Below, piece after piece: positions 51,240 through 63,773 of a stretch of 64,000 nt of DNA. Below the pieces are notes generated by a model, which ran no database searches, had not been told where the DNA came from, and saw nothing but the letters and a program-made list of their open reading frames with translations. Origin of the DNA: Phaeosaccion multiseriatum (taxonomy: Eukaryota > Protista > Ochrophyta, other classes); contig OZ218952.1 in the NCBI GenBank assembly GCA_965112735.1, positions 806,001 to 870,000 on the forward strand, given 5' to 3'. The position numbers and the translations under genes were made by a program. Positions within the stretch are counted from its first letter, which is position 1; every line of letters starts with the position of its first letter.

Positions 51240-52160
51240 GACTGTACTCACGCACTCCTCTTCACCTAATGTACTCACTCACTCCTCTTCACCTAATGTA
51301 CTCACTCACTCTCTCACTTCCTTTCTCACTCCTCACTCATTCACTCTCTCACTCTCTCACTTTCTCACTCTCTCACTCTCTCACTCTCTCACTCACTCAC
51401 TCACTCACTCACTCTCTCACTCTCTCACATCCTTTCTCACTCCTCACTCACTCACTCACTCACTCACTCATTCACTCACCCACCCACTCACTCACTCACT
51501 CACTCACTCACCCACTCACTCACTCACTCGCCATGGGAGGAAAGAGGCGACAGTAAACTGAAGTTGCCCTTTCTCCCCACCTATCGCATTGCTTTTCTGA
51601 TTGACTGTGGAAAGTCGTGCGATCGACCTCCACGGAAACGGACTAACTAGACACACAGATCAGGTACCACCCCACATCTTTGCCAGACTTGTCTCTATTC
51701 GCTTATCTATGCGCTGTCCTAAATGATCACCTGCAGGAGGATAGTGAGAATCGGGCCACCGTTTCTCACTGTATTTTCCCTACGCCTGGGCCACTGGCAT
51801 ACAACAACAGACCTTCAACATCCCCGTCAGCCATCCTTAACCCGATATATCACCCGTTTGACCAAACACTCTTGCGTGCTCTCACGCACTGAAGCTGTCC
51901 TGCTGATGCTACCTACTTGCCTTTCCACTCAGTCTCAGGCCACGGGTGAGAACAGTACAAAATCACCCACCAGTGTGTGACGTGTCCGTCCGTCCCCCCC
52001 CCCTTCCCACACACCTGCCACGGCAAGGTGAGAAAGCCCAGCAGTGCCTCAGAATCACCCTCCGTGGCTGCCCTGCCCACTTTTGCTTTGACTGATACCT
52101 CCCGGTCTGAATTCAGAGGATAAGTATCAGTCTAGCAAAAGTACGACTTCTACCATCAAA

Positions 52161-53460
52161 GAGTGAGTGAGTGAGTGAGTGAGTGAGTGAGTGAGTGAGT
52201 GAGTGAGTGAGTGAGTGAGTGAGTGAGGCTGAGTGAGGCTGAGTGAGTGAGTGAGTGAGAGAGTGAGTGAGGCTGAGTGAGTGAGTGAGTGAGTGAATGG
52301 AGTGAGTGAGTGAAGTGATTGTGTGAGTGAGTGAGTGAGTGAGTGAGTGAGTGAGTGAGTGAGTGAGTGAGTGAGTGAGTGAGTGAGTGAGTGAGTGAGT
52401 GAGTGAGTGAGTGAGTGAGTGAGTGAGTGAGTGAGTGAGTGAGTGAGTGAGTGAGTGAGTGAGTGAGTGAGTGAGTGAGTGAGTGAGTGAGTGAGTGAGT
52501 GAGTGAGTGAGTGAGTGAGTGAGTGAGTGAGTGAGTGAGTGAGTGAGTGAGTGAGTGAGTGAGTGAGTGAGTGAGTGAGTGAGTGAGTGAGTGAGTGAGT
52601 GAGTGAGTGAGTGAGTGAGTGAGTGAGTGAGTGAGTGAGTGAGTGAGTGAGTGAGTGAGTGAGTGAGTGAGTGAGTGAGTGAGTGAGTGAGGTGAGTGAG
52701 TGAGTGAGTGAGTGAGTGAGTGAGTGAGTGAGTGAGTGAGTGAGTGAGTGAGTGAGTGAGTGAGTGAGTGAGTGAGTGAGTGAGTGAGTGAGTGAGTGAG
52801 TGAGTGAGTGAGTGAGTGAGTGAGTGAGTGAGTGAGTGAGTGAGTGAGTGAGTGAGTGAGTGAGTGAGTGAGTGAGTGAGTGAGTGAGTGAGTGAGTGAG
52901 TGAGTGAGTGAGTGAGTGAGTGAGTGAGTGAGTGAGTGAGTGAGTGAGTGAGTGAGTGAGTGAGTGAGTGAGTGAGTGAGTGAGTGAGTGAGTGAGTGAG
53001 TGAGTGAGTGAGTGAGTGAGTGAGTGAGTGAGTGAGTGAGTGAGTGAGTGAGTGAGTGAGTGAGTGAGTGAGTGAGTGAGTGAGTGAGTGAGTGAGTGAG
53101 TGAGTGAGTGAGTGAGTGAGTGAGTGAGTGAGTGAGTGAGTGAGTGAGTGAGTGAGTGAGTGAGTGAGTGAGTGAGTGAGTGAGTGAGTGAGTGAGTGAG
53201 TGAGTGAGTGAGTGAGTGAGTGAGTGAGTGAGTGAGTGAGTGAGTGAGTGAGTGAGTGAGTGAGTGAGTGAGTGAGTGAGTGAGTGAGTGAGTGAGTGAG
53301 TGAGTGAGTGAGTGAGTGAGTGAGTGAGTGAGTGCGTGAGTGAGTGAGTGAGTGAGTGAGTGAGTGAGTGAGTGGTGAGTGAGGGAGTGGGTGAGTGAGT
53401 GAGTGAGTGAGTGAGTGAGTGAGTGAGTGAGGCTGAGTGAGTGAGGCTGAGTGAGTGAAG
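52161..53460. repeat. ~1.3-kb (GAGT)n microsatellite, intergenic
   Basis: Nearly perfect tetranucleotide run; source of the THSL ORFs. Confidence 0.97.
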
Positions 53461-53539
53461 AGGGTCAGTACGTATATATCGAGAGAGTGATTGGAGTGGG
53501 TTGCTGAGTACATGAAGAAAGCTGTAAAAAAGGCAGAAG

Positions 53540-53572
<33 letters not shown>

Positions 53573-53884
53573 CCTTCCACTGACCAAGATAGAGCCTGAA
53601 CCTCCTGACAGAGGAAGAGCAGAGCAGTACACCGACGAGAGCGGGACGCCTTCCCTGGCAAATCTGGTGTTGGTACGCATAGTTAGGGAAGGTCGAAAGA
53701 GGCGTTTTTGTTCAATGCACAATCATTTATTATTCTTTTCTACTAAACCAACTTCAAACAGAGTGTGTGTGTGTGGGTGGGTGTGTGTGGGTGTGGGTGT
53801 GCGTGTGCGTGTGTGTGTGTGGGTGCCTCTCCTCAACAACACCCTTCTTTCATCTATAGACTCATCCGCAGCGGCGTGTTAGCA

Positions 53885-55396
53885 TTACACCGTAGGGCAG
53901 GGGGCGAAACGCCTTCCACCACAGAAGCGGCAGAGAGCGTCCTCAAGCCCCTCGACGCTGGCACGTTCGTTGATGTGGGCATTGCAACCAAGGCCGCCGT
54001 TGACGCAGGCGGGATCTGTGTAGCACGAGTCCTGGATAGGCCAGACGTCGGCACAGTACTGGGTGCACGCGTCCACGGCATCGTCGGGTGTTACAGGAGC
54101 CCGAGTGGTCGGGGCAGAGGTGGCAGCAGGGGCAGTCGTAGCGGCAGGGGTAGGCGCGGCCGCAGGAGCAGTCGTGGAATCAGGGCAGGCGAGGTACATG
54201 TCGCCTCCGCAGAAGCGGCAGAGAGCGTCCTCAAGCCCCTCGATGCCAGCACGAGCACGAGCTCCAATGTGGGCGTCGCAACCAAGTCCGCCGGTCGCAC
54301 ACTGGGGGTCCGTGTAGCAGGCGGCTTGGTCGGGCCACACGTTGGCACAGTATTCAGTGCACGCGTCCCCCTCCACCACGGCCACTGGGGAACTCGTGAC
54401 GGGTGCGGTGGTGGCTACAGGGGCAGTCGTAACGGCAGGGGTAGGCGTGGCCGCAGGGGCAGTCGTGGAATCAGGGCAGGCGAGGTACATGTCGCCTCCA
54501 CAGAAGCGGCAGAGAGCATCCTCAAGCCCCTCCACATTGGCACGAACTCCAATGTGGGCGTCGCAACCAAGTCCGCCGGTCGCACATTGGGGGTCCGTGT
54601 AGCAGGCGGCTTGGGTGGGCCAGAAGTCGGCACAGTACTTGGTGCACGCGTCCCCCTCCACCACGGCCACTGGGGAACTCGTGACGGGTGCGGTGGTGGC
54701 TACAGGGGCAGTCGTCGCTGTGGTGACGGGCGTGGGTGTGGGCGCGCAGTCCTCTCCGCCCTCCATCACGGGGCAAGCGAGGCACTCAGTGGCCATCCAT
54801 GGGAAGGACTCACACTGGCGGCAGCCCAGGATGTTGCCCAAGTTGCAGCCCCCGCCTCCTCCGTTGGCCACACACACGGGGTCGTAGAAGCACTCGATGC
54901 CAGGCTGCTCCGCGCAGAAGGCCTCGCACTCGGCGCAGGAAGGGTCCGGCATGGGCGGCTCGCAAGTTGGAGCCGCCGTGGTTGGAGCCGCCGTGGTTGG
55001 AGCCGCGGTCGTTGGTGCGGGCGTTGGAGCGGGCGTGGGAGCTGGTGTAGTAGGGGCGGGCGTTGGAGCGGGCGTAGTAGGGGCGGGCGTTGGAGCGGGC
55101 GTGGGAGCTGGCGTAGTGGGGGCGGGCGTGGGAGCGGGCGTGGGAGCCGGCGTAGTGGGGGCGGGCGTTGGAGCGGGCGTGGGAGCTGGCGTAGTAGGGG
55201 CGGGCGTGGGAGCGGGCGTGGGAGCCGGCGTAGTAGGGGCGGGCGTGGGAGCGGGCGTGGGAGCTGGCGTAGTAGGGCCGGGCGTGGGAGGGAGGGTGAT
55301 GGTGGGGGCGGGGGTCTCAGCCCACATTCCGGCCTCCACTGCGCTGAATGTGGCGCATCCCACTAGGACCGCGATCAAGGTCTTGATGGAAGGCAT
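53885..55396 (-). CDS. Gene C: secreted 503-aa protein; signal peptide, PTPAPT mucin stalk, four Cys-rich modules, no TM
   Basis: Single [25 protein letters not shown]. Modules CFYDPVC...[15 protein letters not shown] and three copies of CYTDPxC..GGLGC[DN]AHI...LCRFCGG...CP. Possible 5'-UTR intron (donor AAG|GTAAGC at ~55738). Confidence 0.9.
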
Positions 55397-58463: not shown

Positions 58464-61400
58464 ATGCGAGGACGTCGATGTGGCCCTGGCACTCTCCTGT
58501 GCTTTGTGCCGTCCGTGGCGGCTTGGTGCAGTGTATCACCGCCGCCAACGGTGGTGAACAGACCTTCACACCAGCAGGAGCAGAGTCGGCATCAGCCTTC
58601 GCAGCTGTGTGGCTCGTCCCTGGAGTCAAGGCAGACTCGAAAGAGGGGGAGGAACGAGATCGGACGTCTCCATAGCTCTGTGCGTCGTGGTGCATCGCAG
58701 ACGAAGAAAACCACCATACAGCGGCAGCAACAAGGCGGGGCCAGGACCGGGGTGGTGGAGGAGGAGCGAGCGGCGGAGGCGGCCAAGGTGCAACGGCAGC
58801 AGGAGAAGGTGGCAGAGAAGAGAGAAGCAATCATTGAATGGCTACAAGCCGCTCTGGAGCTGAAAGACCCCACCGCAGATACTCGTGCTGCTAGTGAGAC
58901 GCTCCGCGACGGGGACAAGGATAGCACCCGCAGCGGCAGCAGCGTCGCTTCGACGAACAAACAGAGAGTAGAGGCGATGCTAGACAAGTGCCCGTCCTTG
59001 GTGCGCAAGCTCAAGGACCGCGAGCAGATGAACACCCTGCTCAGCTTCCTGGCGAGAGATGTGGGGCTGGAGCTTCCCGAGGTTGTGAAGGTGCTCACCA
59101 GGCATCCTCAGCTCTTCCTGTACTCCACTGAGTTCCTACACGAGGTTGTGGCCTGGCTACAAGCCCCCTTGCCGGACAGGTGCGGTGGTGAGCAGTACAC
59201 AACCACGACGGACGCAGAAACCACCGAGGAGACGGCACATGGCGATGGTAGCGAGTCCGACCACGATGGAGGAGAAGGAGCAGGAGGAGCAGGAGGAAGG
59301 GGGGGGGGGGGAGGTATGAGGCTCTTTCCTGTGCGGTTAGAGGAGGGCAAGCCATGGCGGTGGGGGCTGGGGCTCTCGAAGCAGCAGCTTGCCACTGTCG
59401 TCTCGCGGCAGGGGGATCTCCTGTGGAAGAGCGTGGAGAACAATTTGGCCCACAAGGCGGCCTTCTTCCTCCGAGAAATGGGTATGGACCCCAATCAGAT
59501 GCGTGCCATGATCTGCAGGGGCCCTGCGGTGTGGACACTCAGCGTGGATGGCAATCTACGGCCCAAGCTTCGCTTCTATCAGCAGGAGTTGGGTATGCGG
59601 CCCCGGAAGCTTACACGGGTCATGGAGAAGAGCCCCAGCTTCTTTACCCTCAGGTGAGTATGCGGTGAGAGGCAGAGGGAGGGTGAGGTAGAGAGGGGGG
59701 GGGGGGGGCAGGGAGAGGGGGAGGCAGGGAGGGAGGGAGGGAGGGAGGGAGGGAGGGAGGGAGGGAGGGAGTTAGGGGGAGAGAGCCAAAGCTTCTTTTC
59801 CGTCAGGTGAGCAGGTGCCGTGCCATGACGTAGGACGTTGCGTTGGAATAAGGCACACACTCACCCACCCACCCCACCCACCCACTCAACCACTCAACCA
59901 CCCCACCCACCCACTCACCCATCCACTCACCCATGCCCTCACCCATCCACTCACCCACACACCCACCTATCCACTCACCTATCCCCTCACTCACTCACCC
60001 ATCCACTCACCCATCCCCTCACCCATCCACTCACCCATCCACTCACCCATCCACTCACCCATCCACTCACCCATCCACTCACCCATCCACTCTCCCATCC
60101 ACTCACCCATCCACTCACCCATCCACTCACCCATCCACTCACCCACCCACCCACACACCCACTCACCTATCCTCTCACTCACTCACCCATCCACTCACCC
60201 ATCCGCTCACCCACCCACTCACCCATCCACTCACCCATCCACTCACCCATCTACTCACCCATCCACTCACCCATCCACTCACCCATCCACTCCCCCATCC
60301 ACTCACTCATCCACTCACCCATCCACTCACCCATCCACTCACCCATCCACTCACCCATCCACTCACTCACTCACCCATCCACTCTCCCATCCACTCACCC
60401 ATCCACTCACCCATCCCCTCACCCATCCACTCACCCATCCACTCACCCATCCACTCACCCATCCACTCACTCACTCACCCATCCACTCTCCCATCCACTC
60501 TCCCATCCACTCACCCATCCACTCACCCATCCACTCACCCATCCCCTCACCCATCCACTCACCCATCCACTCACCCATCTACTCACCCATCCCCTCACCC
60601 ATCCCCTCACCCATCCACTCACCCATCCACTCTCCCATCCACTCACCCATCCACTCACCCATCCACTCACCCATCCCCTCACTCACTCACCCATCCACTC
60701 ACCCATCCACTCACCCATCCACTCACCCATCCACTCACCCATCCACTCACCCATCCACTCACCCATCCACTCACCCATCCACTCACCCATCCACTCACCC
60801 ATCCACTCACCCATCCACTCACCCATCCACTCACCCATCCCCTCACCCATCCACTCACCCATCCACTCACTCATCCACTCACCCATCCACTCACTCACCC
60901 ACTCACCCATCCACTCACCCATCCCCTCACCCATCCACTCACCCATCTACTCACCCATCCCCTCACCCATCCACTCACCCATCCCCTCACCCATCCACTC
61001 ACCCATCCCCTCACCCATCCACTCACCCATCCACTCACCCATCCACTCACCCATCCACTCTCCCATCCACTCACCCATCCACTCACCCATCCCCTCACCC
61101 ATCCACTCACCCATCCACTCACCCATCCACTCACCCATCCACTCACCCATCCACTCACCCATCTACTCACCCATCCCCTCACCCATCCCCTCACCCATCC
61201 ACTCACCCATCCACTCTCCCATCTACTCACCCATCCACTCACCCATCCACTCACCCATCCCCTCACCCATCCCCTCACCCATCCCCTCACCCATCCCCTC
61301 ACCCATCCACTCACCCATCCACTCACCCATCCACTCACCCATCCACTCACCCATCTACTCACCCATCCCCTCACCCATCCACTCCCTCCCCTCCCTCCCC

Positions 61401-62540
61401 ACCGGTCTCACCAGCGTGGACAAGAACGCCCGACCGAAGGTTGCCTTCTTCCACGACGTTCTCGGGGCCTCCCTCGAAATGATCGCGCACACTCTGGAGG
61501 AGTCACCACGCTTCCTCAACGCGAGCATGAAGTCAAGAGTGCTTCCCCGAGTGTCTCGATTATCCAAGGGTGGGATAGAGCCCAGCTTTGAGCACATTGC
61601 GCTGCTCTGTACGTACACCGAGGTAGGGCAGGTGGGGCGAGGGAGGGACGGGCGGACAGATTGAGTGAGGGGGAGAGGGATGGAGGGAGGGAGGGAGGGA
61701 GGGAGGGAGGGAGGGAGGGAGGGAGGGAGGGAGGGAGGGAGAGAGGGAGGGAGGGAGGGAGAGAGGGAGGGAGGGAGGGAGGGGGGGAGGGAGGGAGGGA
61801 GGGAGGGAGGGAGGGAGGGAGGGACAGAGTACGGGAGTAAAAGGAAGATTACGCAAAATGCGTCACTCCCTTTTCTACCTGTGTCGTGCCTTTTCTATCT
61901 GTCTTGTGTCTGTATCACCAACTGCTGTTTCTGCGAGTGTTGGTACTGGAGCTTTGAGCTTTAGGCAGTGATCCTCTCTCCCTACGTCTCATCTCTCTTT
62001 CTCTTTGGTCAGGACAAGTTCGAGGCGGCTCTGCTGAGGCTCATCGTAGCGAAGAGAGCATTCCTGGCCCAGTCCGCCGCACTGAGAGAGGCAGCGGCGG
62101 CAGAAGCAGCAGCAGTTGGGGATACGGCACCAGTTGTCGTCTTAGCGGCAGGAGGAGCTGGAGGAGGAGGAGGAGGAGGAGGAGGAGGAGGAGGAGTCAA
62201 GGAAGAACATGAAGGACAGGGCAGTGCCCCACACGGAGCGGAGGAGGGGGGGGCGTCATCAGTACGGCGGTCGGCTACAGCCGAAGCAGCAGTAGAAGGA
62301 GCCGAAGGGGCAGCAATAGCAGGAGGAGGAGAAGGAGGAGGAGGAGCGGGGGCGATTTCAATGGTGATCAAAGGCAGGGCTGGAAGAGGGGAGGGTAGCC
62401 CGTCGATTGCGGCAGCCGTCGCTGGTGGCGGAGGGCCCTTGTCAGTCGTGGTCAGCAGCAGGAGCGGGGGGCGAGGGACAAGACGGGCAGTCACTGGTGT
62501 GGCAGTGGTCGGCTCTGATGCGCAGGAAGAATCAATTATT

Positions 62541-62581
<41 letters not shown>

Positions 62582-63773
62582 CCCCTCGCTTTCCCCGTCG
62601 GACCCCTCAGGCGTACTGCCAGCCACCACCACCGCCACCACCACGACCACCACGACCACCACGACCACCACCACTGCATCGCCTCGTCCTGCAGCTGCTG
62701 GACGGAGGTTTGGCAGCAGGAAGGGAGGACCTCATTGGGACTATACTCGTAACGCTCTCGCCACGGCACTCGTCCCCGGGGGGCTCAAGTTTGCGGAGAT
62801 ACCCGAGGGTATTCCATACGGGCAGCGGCGGGCAGGGGGAGGGGTCGGGCGGATAGGAGGGCCGGGGGGGCAGGGGAAGCAGTTGGTGATACAGGGGCTG
62901 CAACAGGGGAAGGGGCAGCAGTTGGTGATACAGGGGCAGGGGCGGCAAGGGAGGGCCGGAGTGGACGAAGGACGGACAGCGGGGAGAGAGTTTTTGCACC
63001 GAGGTGGGGTGTGCGAGGGCTTGCGAGTGCTTGATCTCTTTTGCTACACAGGCTCCTTTGCCCTCAGTGCTCTGGCAGGAGGGGCGGCGTCCGCGACGGG
63101 GGTGGATCGCGATGGGTACGCCCTTCGGCTTGCGGCACTCAACGCCAAGCGGAATGGGCTGGTGGGGAAGGTGACGTGGTGTAAGGGTGAGGTAGGGGCC
63201 TATGTGAGTGAGCTGCTGGGGGAGGGGGAGGAGGAGGAGAAGAAGAAGAAGCACAAGAAGCGGTTGTTCGACCTTGTTGTGCTGGATCCGCCATCCTTCT
63301 CCCGCTCTCCTCGCTCCGTGACACGAGCTCAGAACAAGTTTGCGGCTCTAGCCGGGCGCGCATCGCTGTTGGTGCGGCCGTCGAGCGGGATGCTCCTATT
63401 GGTAGGGTGTGGAGGCACGTTTGGGAGCGCAGAGGAGATGGAGGAGTGTGTGGCTGGGGCGGTGGCTCGGCAAGGGAGGCGAGTTACCCTTCTGCAGAGG
63501 CTGAGCGACGACGCTATTACTGCTGATGGTGGAGAAGAGGAGGAGGAGGAGGGGGAGGGGGAGGAGGAGGAGGAGGAGGAGGAGGAGGAGGAGGAGGAGG
63601 AGGAGGAGGAGGAGGAGGAGGAGGGGTGGGGGAAGAGGGAGGGGGAGGAGAGGGGGGCGGAGGAGAGGGAGGAGGATGGGGAGGGAAAGGATGGTACAGC
63701 ACCAGCGGCGCTCCCTCCCCCTCACATGTCGCTGCTCGTCGTGTCTGAGCCGGTGGTCGCTGGGTTGCCGTAG
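58464..63773 (+). CDS. Predicted plastid-targeted mTERF-repeat protein fused to an RlmI/YccW-like SAM-dependent RNA methyltransferase domain, ~1,052 aa
   Basis: Exons 58464-59653, 61415-61622, 62013-63773, in frame. mTERF repeats: [75 protein letters not shown]. MTase: [54 protein letters not shown]. Confidence 0.8.
59850..61390. repeat. ~1.5-kb minisatellite of the 12-mer CCATCCACTCAC in intron 1 of the mTERF gene
   Basis: Tandem 12-mer with CCATCCCCTCAC / CCATCTACTCAC variants; source of the HSPI/THPL ORFs. Confidence 0.96.

Follow-up and report, generated by a model that had tools for sequence, protein, structure and literature searches.

Organelle gene expression depends centrally on both mTERF proteins and ribosomal RNA (rRNA) methyltransferases. 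To our knowledge, the only well-understood partnership between an mTERF protein and an rRNA methyltransferase is that of MTERF4 and NSUN4 in animals. A stretch of 64,000 nucleotides (nt) from the ochrophyte alga Phaeosaccion multiseriatum (assembly GCA_965112735.1, contig OZ218952.1, forward-strand positions 806,001 to 870,000), referred to here as the window, raises the question of whether the two kinds of part can be carried by one polypeptide and which role such a polypeptide would have. A first-pass annotation had proposed that, between positions 58464 and 63773, an mTERF array is spliced in frame to an RlmI-type methyltransferase devoid of a PUA domain, giving a one-chain analogue of MTERF4-NSUN4 that probably acts in the plastid. 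The locus is one nuclear gene for a protein of ~1,052 amino acids (aa), orthologous to an unnamed protein of Ectocarpus. The fusion is very probably real and is conserved; it is a new combination of known kinds of part, and the databases have contained it without a name ever since the Ectocarpus genome became available.

Gene structure and the Ectocarpus counterpart

Three open segments of the + strand, 58464-59653, 61415-61622 and 62013-63773, join via canonical GT..AG splice sites into a coding sequence of 3,159 nt and 1,052 aa with no internal stops (Table 1). Exon 1 ends in …CTCAG, followed by the donor GTGAGT at 59654, and exon 3 begins with GACAAGTTCGAG (GAC AAG TTC GAG). Reading through either donor leads to a stop within a few to ~14 codons, at 59655-59657 after exon 1 or at 61662-61664 after exon 2. 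The Pfam mTERF profile (PF02536) matches exon 1 with 49.3 bits against a cut-off of 23.1 (4e-13, aa 302-394) and exon 2 with 20.9 bits over profile positions 251-304. The in-frame splicing of mTERF repeats into the open third exon, as first proposed, therefore stands, since the splice sites are those claimed and the joined frame is uninterrupted. The array itself was also correctly recognized; its repeat count, given as about five, comes to about 6-7 motifs by eye, which is a minor difference.

Table 1. Position and character of the elements of the fusion gene in the window
Feature	Position	Strand	Description
Exon 1	58464..59653	+	396 codons + 2 nt; N-terminal leader, charged region, mTERF motifs, low-complexity insert at aa ~236-290
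Signal-peptide-like start	58464..58523	+	followed by W; candidate bipartite plastid presequence; read from sequence by eye
Intron 1	59654..61414	+	GT..AG; 3' end …CACCAG; with a 1.5-kb microsatellite of 12-nt units and a (GAGG)n run
Exon 2	61415..61622	+	last full mTERF motif and start of terminal helix; ends …ACCGAG, donor GTAGGG
Intron 2	61623..62012	+	GTAGGG…pyrimidine tract…CAG; contains (GAGG)40
Exon 3	62013..63773	+	stop codon included; junction helix, ~290-aa low-complexity linker, methyltransferase domain, acidic insert, final strand
Junction helix	62013..62054	+	Ectocarpus counterpart contiguous with the preceding motif inside one exon
In-frame 21-nt tandem repeat (QGKQLVIQG…)	62871..62939	+	in the beta-hairpin/motif X region, where GQKTG..DQR is degenerate
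Class-I methyltransferase core (COG1092/Methyltrans_SAM)	62997..63509	+	Pfam, NCBIfam and PDB matches; AlphaFold pLDDT ~90+; Foldseek
Motif I, S-adenosylmethionine (SAM) binding	63027..63059	+	alignment to family
Motif IV, DPPSF	63285..63299	+	alignment to family
Cys in line with the RlmI catalytic Cys (SCS motif)	63408..63410	+	GCG (LLVGCGG) here; absent in Ectocarpus orthologues
Acidic insert, (GAG)49	63537..63684	+	between the last two strands of the fold; disordered in the model
Final beta-strand, HMSLLVVS	63723..63746	+	returns to complete the sheet; model strand 342-349, predicted local distance difference test (pLDDT) 70-82

When the methyltransferase domain alone was searched exhaustively by HMMER against 1.84 billion representatives, the best match was an 852-aa protein of Ectocarpus sp. 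6, which according to Pfam carries both mTERF and Methyltrans_SAM and lacks PUA. The same layout is found in E. siliculosus (P0260, 1,003 aa, described as "conserved unknown protein" and in UniRef as "Methyltransferase domain-containing protein") and in Ectocarpus sp. 4 (998 aa). Thus, orthologues with both domains exist in another ochrophyte genus. The order of parts is shared throughout: leader, mTERF array with an insert, terminal helix, disordered linker and a PUA-less COG1092 domain with DPPSF. The two proteins also share a low-complexity insert before the last strand (the Ectocarpus counterpart of that strand, PPPWFALYVCS, comes after an insert of its own) and the loss of the same family-invariant residues. 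Unlike the window protein, the Ectocarpus protein has no catalytic Cys, more N-terminal mTERF motifs and one motif fewer before the terminal helix, and its linker measures ~75 aa as compared to ~290 aa. No extra upstream mTERF exons were detected when the whole window was searched by tblastn with the Ectocarpus protein.

The junction between array and methyltransferase is where the comparison is most direct. In three Ectocarpus species, one uninterrupted exon encodes …AMRAAGAPPAFRHLRALCNYPEDRFSAWLERIVL, a linker and …VLDLMCGTGGFALNAAAGGARSVIGV; the last part of the array and methyltransferase motifs I-II thus lie on a single piece of DNA. The window junction peptide, in which …LCTYTE closes exon 2, aligns without gaps to this contiguous stretch, with 13/29 residues identical and 19/29 similar (pairwise E 2e-7), and it begins within the part of exon 2 that Pfam matches to mTERF. 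Further upstream, the mTERF block EG..W.WGLG… (QGDLLWKSV) is 44% identical over 103 aa to Ectocarpus aa 443-545, a similarity of orthology grade, where other repeat-to-repeat alignments give 23-25%. A low-complexity insert interrupts the array at the same point in both (VVDWLGAPDPE… in Ectocarpus). Identity between window and Ectocarpus is 31-44% in conserved blocks versus 89-96% among Ectocarpus species, which argues for a distant relationship between the two organisms. A maximum-likelihood tree built from 86 methyltransferase domains groups the window with Ectocarpus in a clade (Shimodaira-Hasegawa approximate likelihood-ratio test support 95) that stands apart from the canonical PUA-bearing proteins of a pelagophyte and Nannochloropsis.

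The alternative to a fusion is an mTERF gene that ends in intron 2 and an adjacent, separate methyltransferase gene. Retention of intron 2 would indeed bring the stop at 61662-61664 into frame, an in-frame Met is available within exon 3 (aa ~583), and the sequencing runs that match the locus are DNA only. Against such a division, a single continuous Ectocarpus exon holds the homologues of the exon 2 tail and of the exon 3 head together with methyltransferase motif I, and the peptide spanning the window splice junction is conserved. Moreover, a frame of 586 codons stays open through the linker where the other frames are interrupted, and a stand-alone methyltransferase would have neither an RNA-binding domain nor a targeting leader. 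Two genes are therefore considered highly improbable, and a genuine single-gene fusion is very probable.

Some observations temper this conclusion. The window and Ectocarpus branches of the tree are long, and because of this the tree taken alone is weak; it is not weak when taken together with the collinear mTERF and junction evidence. Compared with one another, the three Ectocarpus species have in each exon a ratio of nonsynonymous to synonymous substitution rates below 1 (0.09-0.93 per exon, 0.09-0.36 for the motif III-IV exon), values that rest on 5-45 substitutions and are compatible with constraint, these being too few to decide. The fused layout has been found in only one other genus, Ectocarpus. 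The public runs matching the locus are four, from one 2024 sample, and their contigs cross both borders of intron 2 unspliced; as they consist of genomic DNA, they say nothing either way on splicing. This mapping covered 61415-63530, with intron 1 left out on account of its 1.5-kb repeat. RNA runs were matched by exon 3 at a low share only (0.06-0.08), probably through simple repeats. Two apparent read joints in the DNA runs were dismissed as artefacts, their sides being 20-22 nt long and lying inside repeats.

Fold and family-invariant residues of the methyltransferase domain

Exon 3 matches Pfam Methyltrans_SAM (PF10672) with 30.8 bits against a cut-off of 27. The RlmI-type NCBIfam models (RlmI, 23S C1962 methyltransferase and RSP_2647) are matched in their C-terminal halves only, with 42-68 bits versus equivalog cut-offs of 575-712. 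Among sequences of solved structures, the METHYLTRANSFERASE part of exon 3 matches PH1915, TTHA1280, E. coli RlmI/YccW, SMU.776, RlmKL and RlmO, with every alignment starting at the hairpin/motif X, and a phmmer search of PDB reached 1.8e-13 for PH1915. An AlphaFold model of this part, built on a 53-row alignment, has a core with pLDDT of about 90+; upstream of it there is one weak hairpin and otherwise disorder. The top Foldseek matches of the model are COG1092 structures (PH1915, TTHA1280, RlmI, RlmKL and RlmO), of whose ~390 residues only ~170-210 are aligned, and PrmA-type protein methyltransferases appear among the weaker ones. Membership of the methyltransferase part in the RlmI/COG1092 fold family is thus supported. 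No match to PF01189, the NSUN/RsmB family, was obtained in exon 3 by Pfam, and the domain is assigned to COG1092.

In RlmI, a methyltransferase domain is combined with PUA and EEHEE domains, and the catalytic Cys belongs to an SCS motif (PMC2836557). With E. coli RlmI (YccW, PDB 3C0K) and its COG1092 relatives PH1915, TTHA1280, RlmO, RlmQ and the RlmK domain, the window protein shares the Rossmann domain, motif I, the Asp of motif II and DPPxF, and with RlmI/COG1092 it also shares a Cys at the SCS position. Unlike these proteins, it has no PUA, EEHEE, motif X, DHP His or C-terminal YL, and it contains large disordered inserts. No PUA_3 or PUA match was found in any exon by Pfam, which detects PF17785 in canonical algal and bacterial relatives. 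Pfam likewise found no EEHEE domain, and the NCBIfam and PDB alignments begin only at the hairpin/motif X. The two domains are truly absent from the fusion protein. It has the mTERF domain and, among the characters of RlmI/COG1092, the catalytic domain only; it should not be filed as RlmI, because PUA, EEHEE, motif X and equivalog-level scores all fail.

A set of 50 canonical sequences has 53 alignment columns with conservation of 80% or more, and the residues of the domain were compared over these. Of the conserved residues, 34 are found in the window and 35 in Ectocarpus, with 29 common to the two. Both retain motif I (VLD..C..G.F), the Asp of motif II, N..NG, D….DPP and GG.L. Gone from both are the Lys and Thr of GQKTG, the Asp of DQR, the Ser that follows the motif II Asp, the DHP His and the terminal Y-L, and in both a near-invariant Tyr is replaced by Phe. 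The K, T and D of motif X (GQKTGxFxDQRxNR) each reach 92% conservation or more in the canonical set and are replaced in both lineages; the DHP His is 96% conserved there and the terminal YL pair at least 96%. These shared losses look like single changes at the origin of the fused clade. The catalytic Cys is present in 100% of the canonical set and in the window (GCG), and is replaced in Ectocarpus (YEPGDG), so that the nucleophile of 5-methylcytosine (m5C) formation is, to judge from the alignment, dispensable in at least one lineage. It has been reported that in COG1092 a Cys with a co-varying His marks the m5C enzymes, and Asn/Phe the 7-methylguanosine enzyme RlmQ (PMC10870370); we infer the co-varying His to be the DHP His.

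These data bear on whether the fusion protein is an active m5C rRNA methyltransferase that mTERF repeats have retargeted, using its retained Cys on plastid 23S rRNA or on a cytosine of another plastid RNA. The window has intact motifs I, II and IV and a Cys in line with the catalytic one of RlmI, PH1915 and TTHA1280, the complete fold is confidently predicted by AlphaFold, and all characterised COG1092 enzymes act on 23S rRNA. On the other hand, the Ectocarpus orthologues have YEPGDG in place of the Cys, and GQKTG..DQR, the DHP His and the YL pair have been lost in the window too. In addition, an in-frame minisatellite lies inside the motif X hairpin, and the NCBIfam scores remain far under the equivalog cut-offs (57 vs 575). 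Retargeted m5C activity is accordingly regarded as unlikely.

The first-pass annotation had identified motif I, DPPSF and the aligned Cys, and these hold against RlmI, PH1915 and TTHA1280. It was also right about the degenerate GQKTG..DQR motif and about the missing PUA/EEHEE N-terminus, for which Pfam is blank and the model disordered upstream of the core, and its description of mTERF as standing in place of PUA/EEHEE is, on the domain search, a fair one of the architecture. It had left open an active enzyme or a pseudo-enzyme scaffold. The active m5C branch loses ground, given the Cys lost in Ectocarpus and the invariant residues lost in both, and a pseudo-enzyme, a scaffold or a changed chemistry fits better.

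Proposed targeting, RNA recognition and role

The window leader reads …VPSVAA followed by W and then by a stretch rich in S, T, P, Q and R with few acidic residues. In Ectocarpus, MWITAWALPFAISATHG is followed by L and an S/R-rich stretch. Both leaders look like the bipartite complex-plastid type, with a signal peptide, an aromatic residue or Leu at +1 and a transit-peptide-like region, and a plastid location of the fusion protein is somewhat favoured on these grounds. Among solved structures, human MTERF3 is the best sequence match of the repeat region (E 4e-5), MTERF4 giving E 0.25-0.68.

The favoured reading, held with moderate confidence, is that of an organelle-imported mTERF-methyltransferase factor, most likely of the complex plastid, that would serve RNA or ribosome biogenesis in a conserved role other than m5C chemistry. 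After its presumed import into the organelle, to which the signal-peptide-like start, the AA-W boundary and the hydroxylated/basic stretch point, the mTERF array would bind organellar RNA, most plausibly large-subunit (LSU) rRNA of the plastid or a pre-50S particle. This target is the most plausible because every characterised COG1092 enzyme has a 23S rRNA substrate and mTERF proteins act in organellar ribosome assembly. In this process the array would replace PUA/EEHEE as the recognition module and bring the methyltransferase-like domain to the RNA via the disordered tether. The conserved role is most likely one of two. It may be SAM-binding, with non-m5C or no catalysis, in RNA folding and ribosome assembly, parallel in function to MTERF4-NSUN4. 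Alternatively, it may consist of methylation with an altered chemistry. Because the catalytic Cys is missing in Ectocarpus, the conserved function of the clade, as read from these sequences, cannot be canonical m5C formation; the window copy could still be active.

Certain facts weigh against this reading. The window copy retains the Cys, the leaders were assessed by eye, and mTERF proteins can bind DNA as well as RNA. A related possibility is that the fusion is real and has another site or target, being mitochondrial, or having its array on organellar DNA in the manner of transcription-termination factors with the domain acting on DNA or on a protein partner. Double-stranded-DNA binders are indeed found among mTERF proteins, human MTERF3 is the best sequence match of the repeat region among solved structures, and PrmA-type protein methyltransferases occur among the weaker fold matches. 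Conversely, the hydrophobic N-terminus, the aromatic +1 residue and the hydroxylated/basic stretch would suit a leader for the complex plastid more than they would an amphipathic presequence for mitochondria, and the nearest relatives in sequence and fold are all rRNA methyltransferases. Such a different site or target is held to be decidedly unlikely, and an RNA-directed factor of the plastid remains the preferred view.

The comparison with MTERF4-NSUN4 needs to be drawn with care. The shared logic is that of an mTERF repeat protein joined with an RNA-methyltransferase fold that has no RNA-targeting domain of its own. MTERF4-NSUN4 consists of two polypeptides, whereas the window protein is one chain. 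NSUN4 belongs to the RsmB/NSUN family (PF01189) and the window methyltransferase to COG1092; the window mTERF part is not specifically MTERF4-like, being no closer to MTERF4 than to MTERF3. The resemblance is therefore one of logic only. MTERF4 is reported to contribute to 16S rRNA folding in late assembly of the human mitoribosomal LSU, and NSUN4 to help the final rearrangements of the peptidyl transferase centre (PMC8209036). In plants, the organelle-targeted mTERF array of Arabidopsis mTERF9 has been linked to rRNA binding, and the protein promotes the assembly of chloroplast ribosomes (PMC7826268). Unlike the window fusion, plant chloroplast mTERFs consist of the repeats without an attached enzyme.

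A bolder version of the favoured reading can be put forward tentatively, as a possibility of rather low probability. Ochrophytes may have independently built a one-chain form of the MTERF4-NSUN4 solution, in which the array would hold immature plastid LSU rRNA and a largely non-catalytic domain would act as a SAM-sensing or structural assembly factor. The window (Cys kept) and Ectocarpus (Cys lost) would then represent two stages of a transition from enzyme to pseudoenzyme. Apart from this bolder version, the covalent fusion conserved in two distant stramenopile algae indicates that mTERF repeats and methyltransferases were paired on more than one occasion, here with a methyltransferase of another family. 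Orthologues with and without the catalytic Cys offer a natural experiment on the need for methylation. Knowledge of plastid ribosome biogenesis would in this way be extended past green plants, and Ectocarpus has genetic tools.

Spread of the fusion and other features of the window

The database searches had a defined scope: the best 150 HMMER matches were listed, the word searches worked within a length window, and few algal proteomes were included. Word-index protein searches with exon 3, P0110 and P0260, limited by that length window and by word sharing, returned no fused relatives beyond Ectocarpus, a blank which is weak evidence. A metagenome scan with the mTERF block gave no matches. With the motif IV-VI block, 80 loci were obtained at 33-59% identity over a short query, none with an mTERF-like region, and these are taken to be ordinary RlmI-family genes. 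A look-up in the ESM Atlas returned generic bacterial methyltransferase clusters only, with scores below 0.9. In a full-text literature search, no published description of an mTERF fusion to an RlmI-type methyltransferase was found.

The same methyltransferase domain has been repeatedly joined to RNA-handling modules, as in RlmKL and in proteins combining PseudoU_synth_2 with Methyltrans_SAM. The partners in these fusions are enzymes or THUMP-type modules, not helical repeats, and those members that have been characterised possess intact catalytic motifs. Many proteins of 520-630 aa (P0038, P0040, P0043, P0045 and others) carry PseudoU_synth_2 (PF00849) and Methyltrans_SAM, which represents another recurrent fusion. 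Ochrophytes also possess canonical RlmI-like proteins with PUA_3, Methyltrans_SAM and N-terminal extensions, namely those of Pelagophyceae sp. CCMP2097 (P0263), Nannochloropsis oceanica (P0115) and L003-L005. They presumably represent the usual 23S rRNA methyltransferase of organelles, in which case the fused gene would be an additional paralogue and not the sole COG1092 member.

In the DNA runs, words of the coding (CCA)n run (62622-62692) are ~90x deeper, and those of the 21-nt coding minisatellite (62906-62976) ~36x deeper, than the neighbouring exon; because of this excess depth, both in-frame repeats are regarded as members of genome-wide sequence families. A small intron hidden in the 21-nt repeat of exon 3 was considered and found no evidence, the frame being the same on both sides. 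Just past the donor, both introns contain (GAGG)n runs, at 59675-59771 (24 copies) and 61663-61824 (40 copies). About 150 nt into intron 1, at 59783-59812, there is a diverged copy of the last ~25 nt of exon 1 with its donor (59630-59659), in which …AGCTTCTTTTCCGTCAG followed by GTGAGC corresponds to …AGCTTCTTTACCCTCAG followed by GTGAGT. It looks like a small exon-end duplication or a decoy donor.

Nearly the whole of intron 1 is filled by a microsatellite at 59858-61384, with about 129 copies of the 12-nt unit CACTCACCCATC at 90% matches. All three + frames are open through it for 550-600 codons, giving spurious 'THPS/HSPI' open reading frames (ORFs). Its interpretation as coding sequence was rejected, since the + strand is nearly free of G (GC skew about -1), so that no stops are possible, and the exon 1 frame stops at 59655. 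Such arrays are unusually abundant in the window. A further microsatellite of ~1.4 kb, read on the - strand at 52113-53661, likewise contains long spurious 'THSL' ORFs. An ORF of 503 aa at 53885-55396 (-) begins in the manner of a signal peptide and contains long (TPAP)n runs together with four repeats rich in Cys (…CYTDP.C..GGLGC…CRFCGG…); its product looks like a secreted or surface mucin-like protein.

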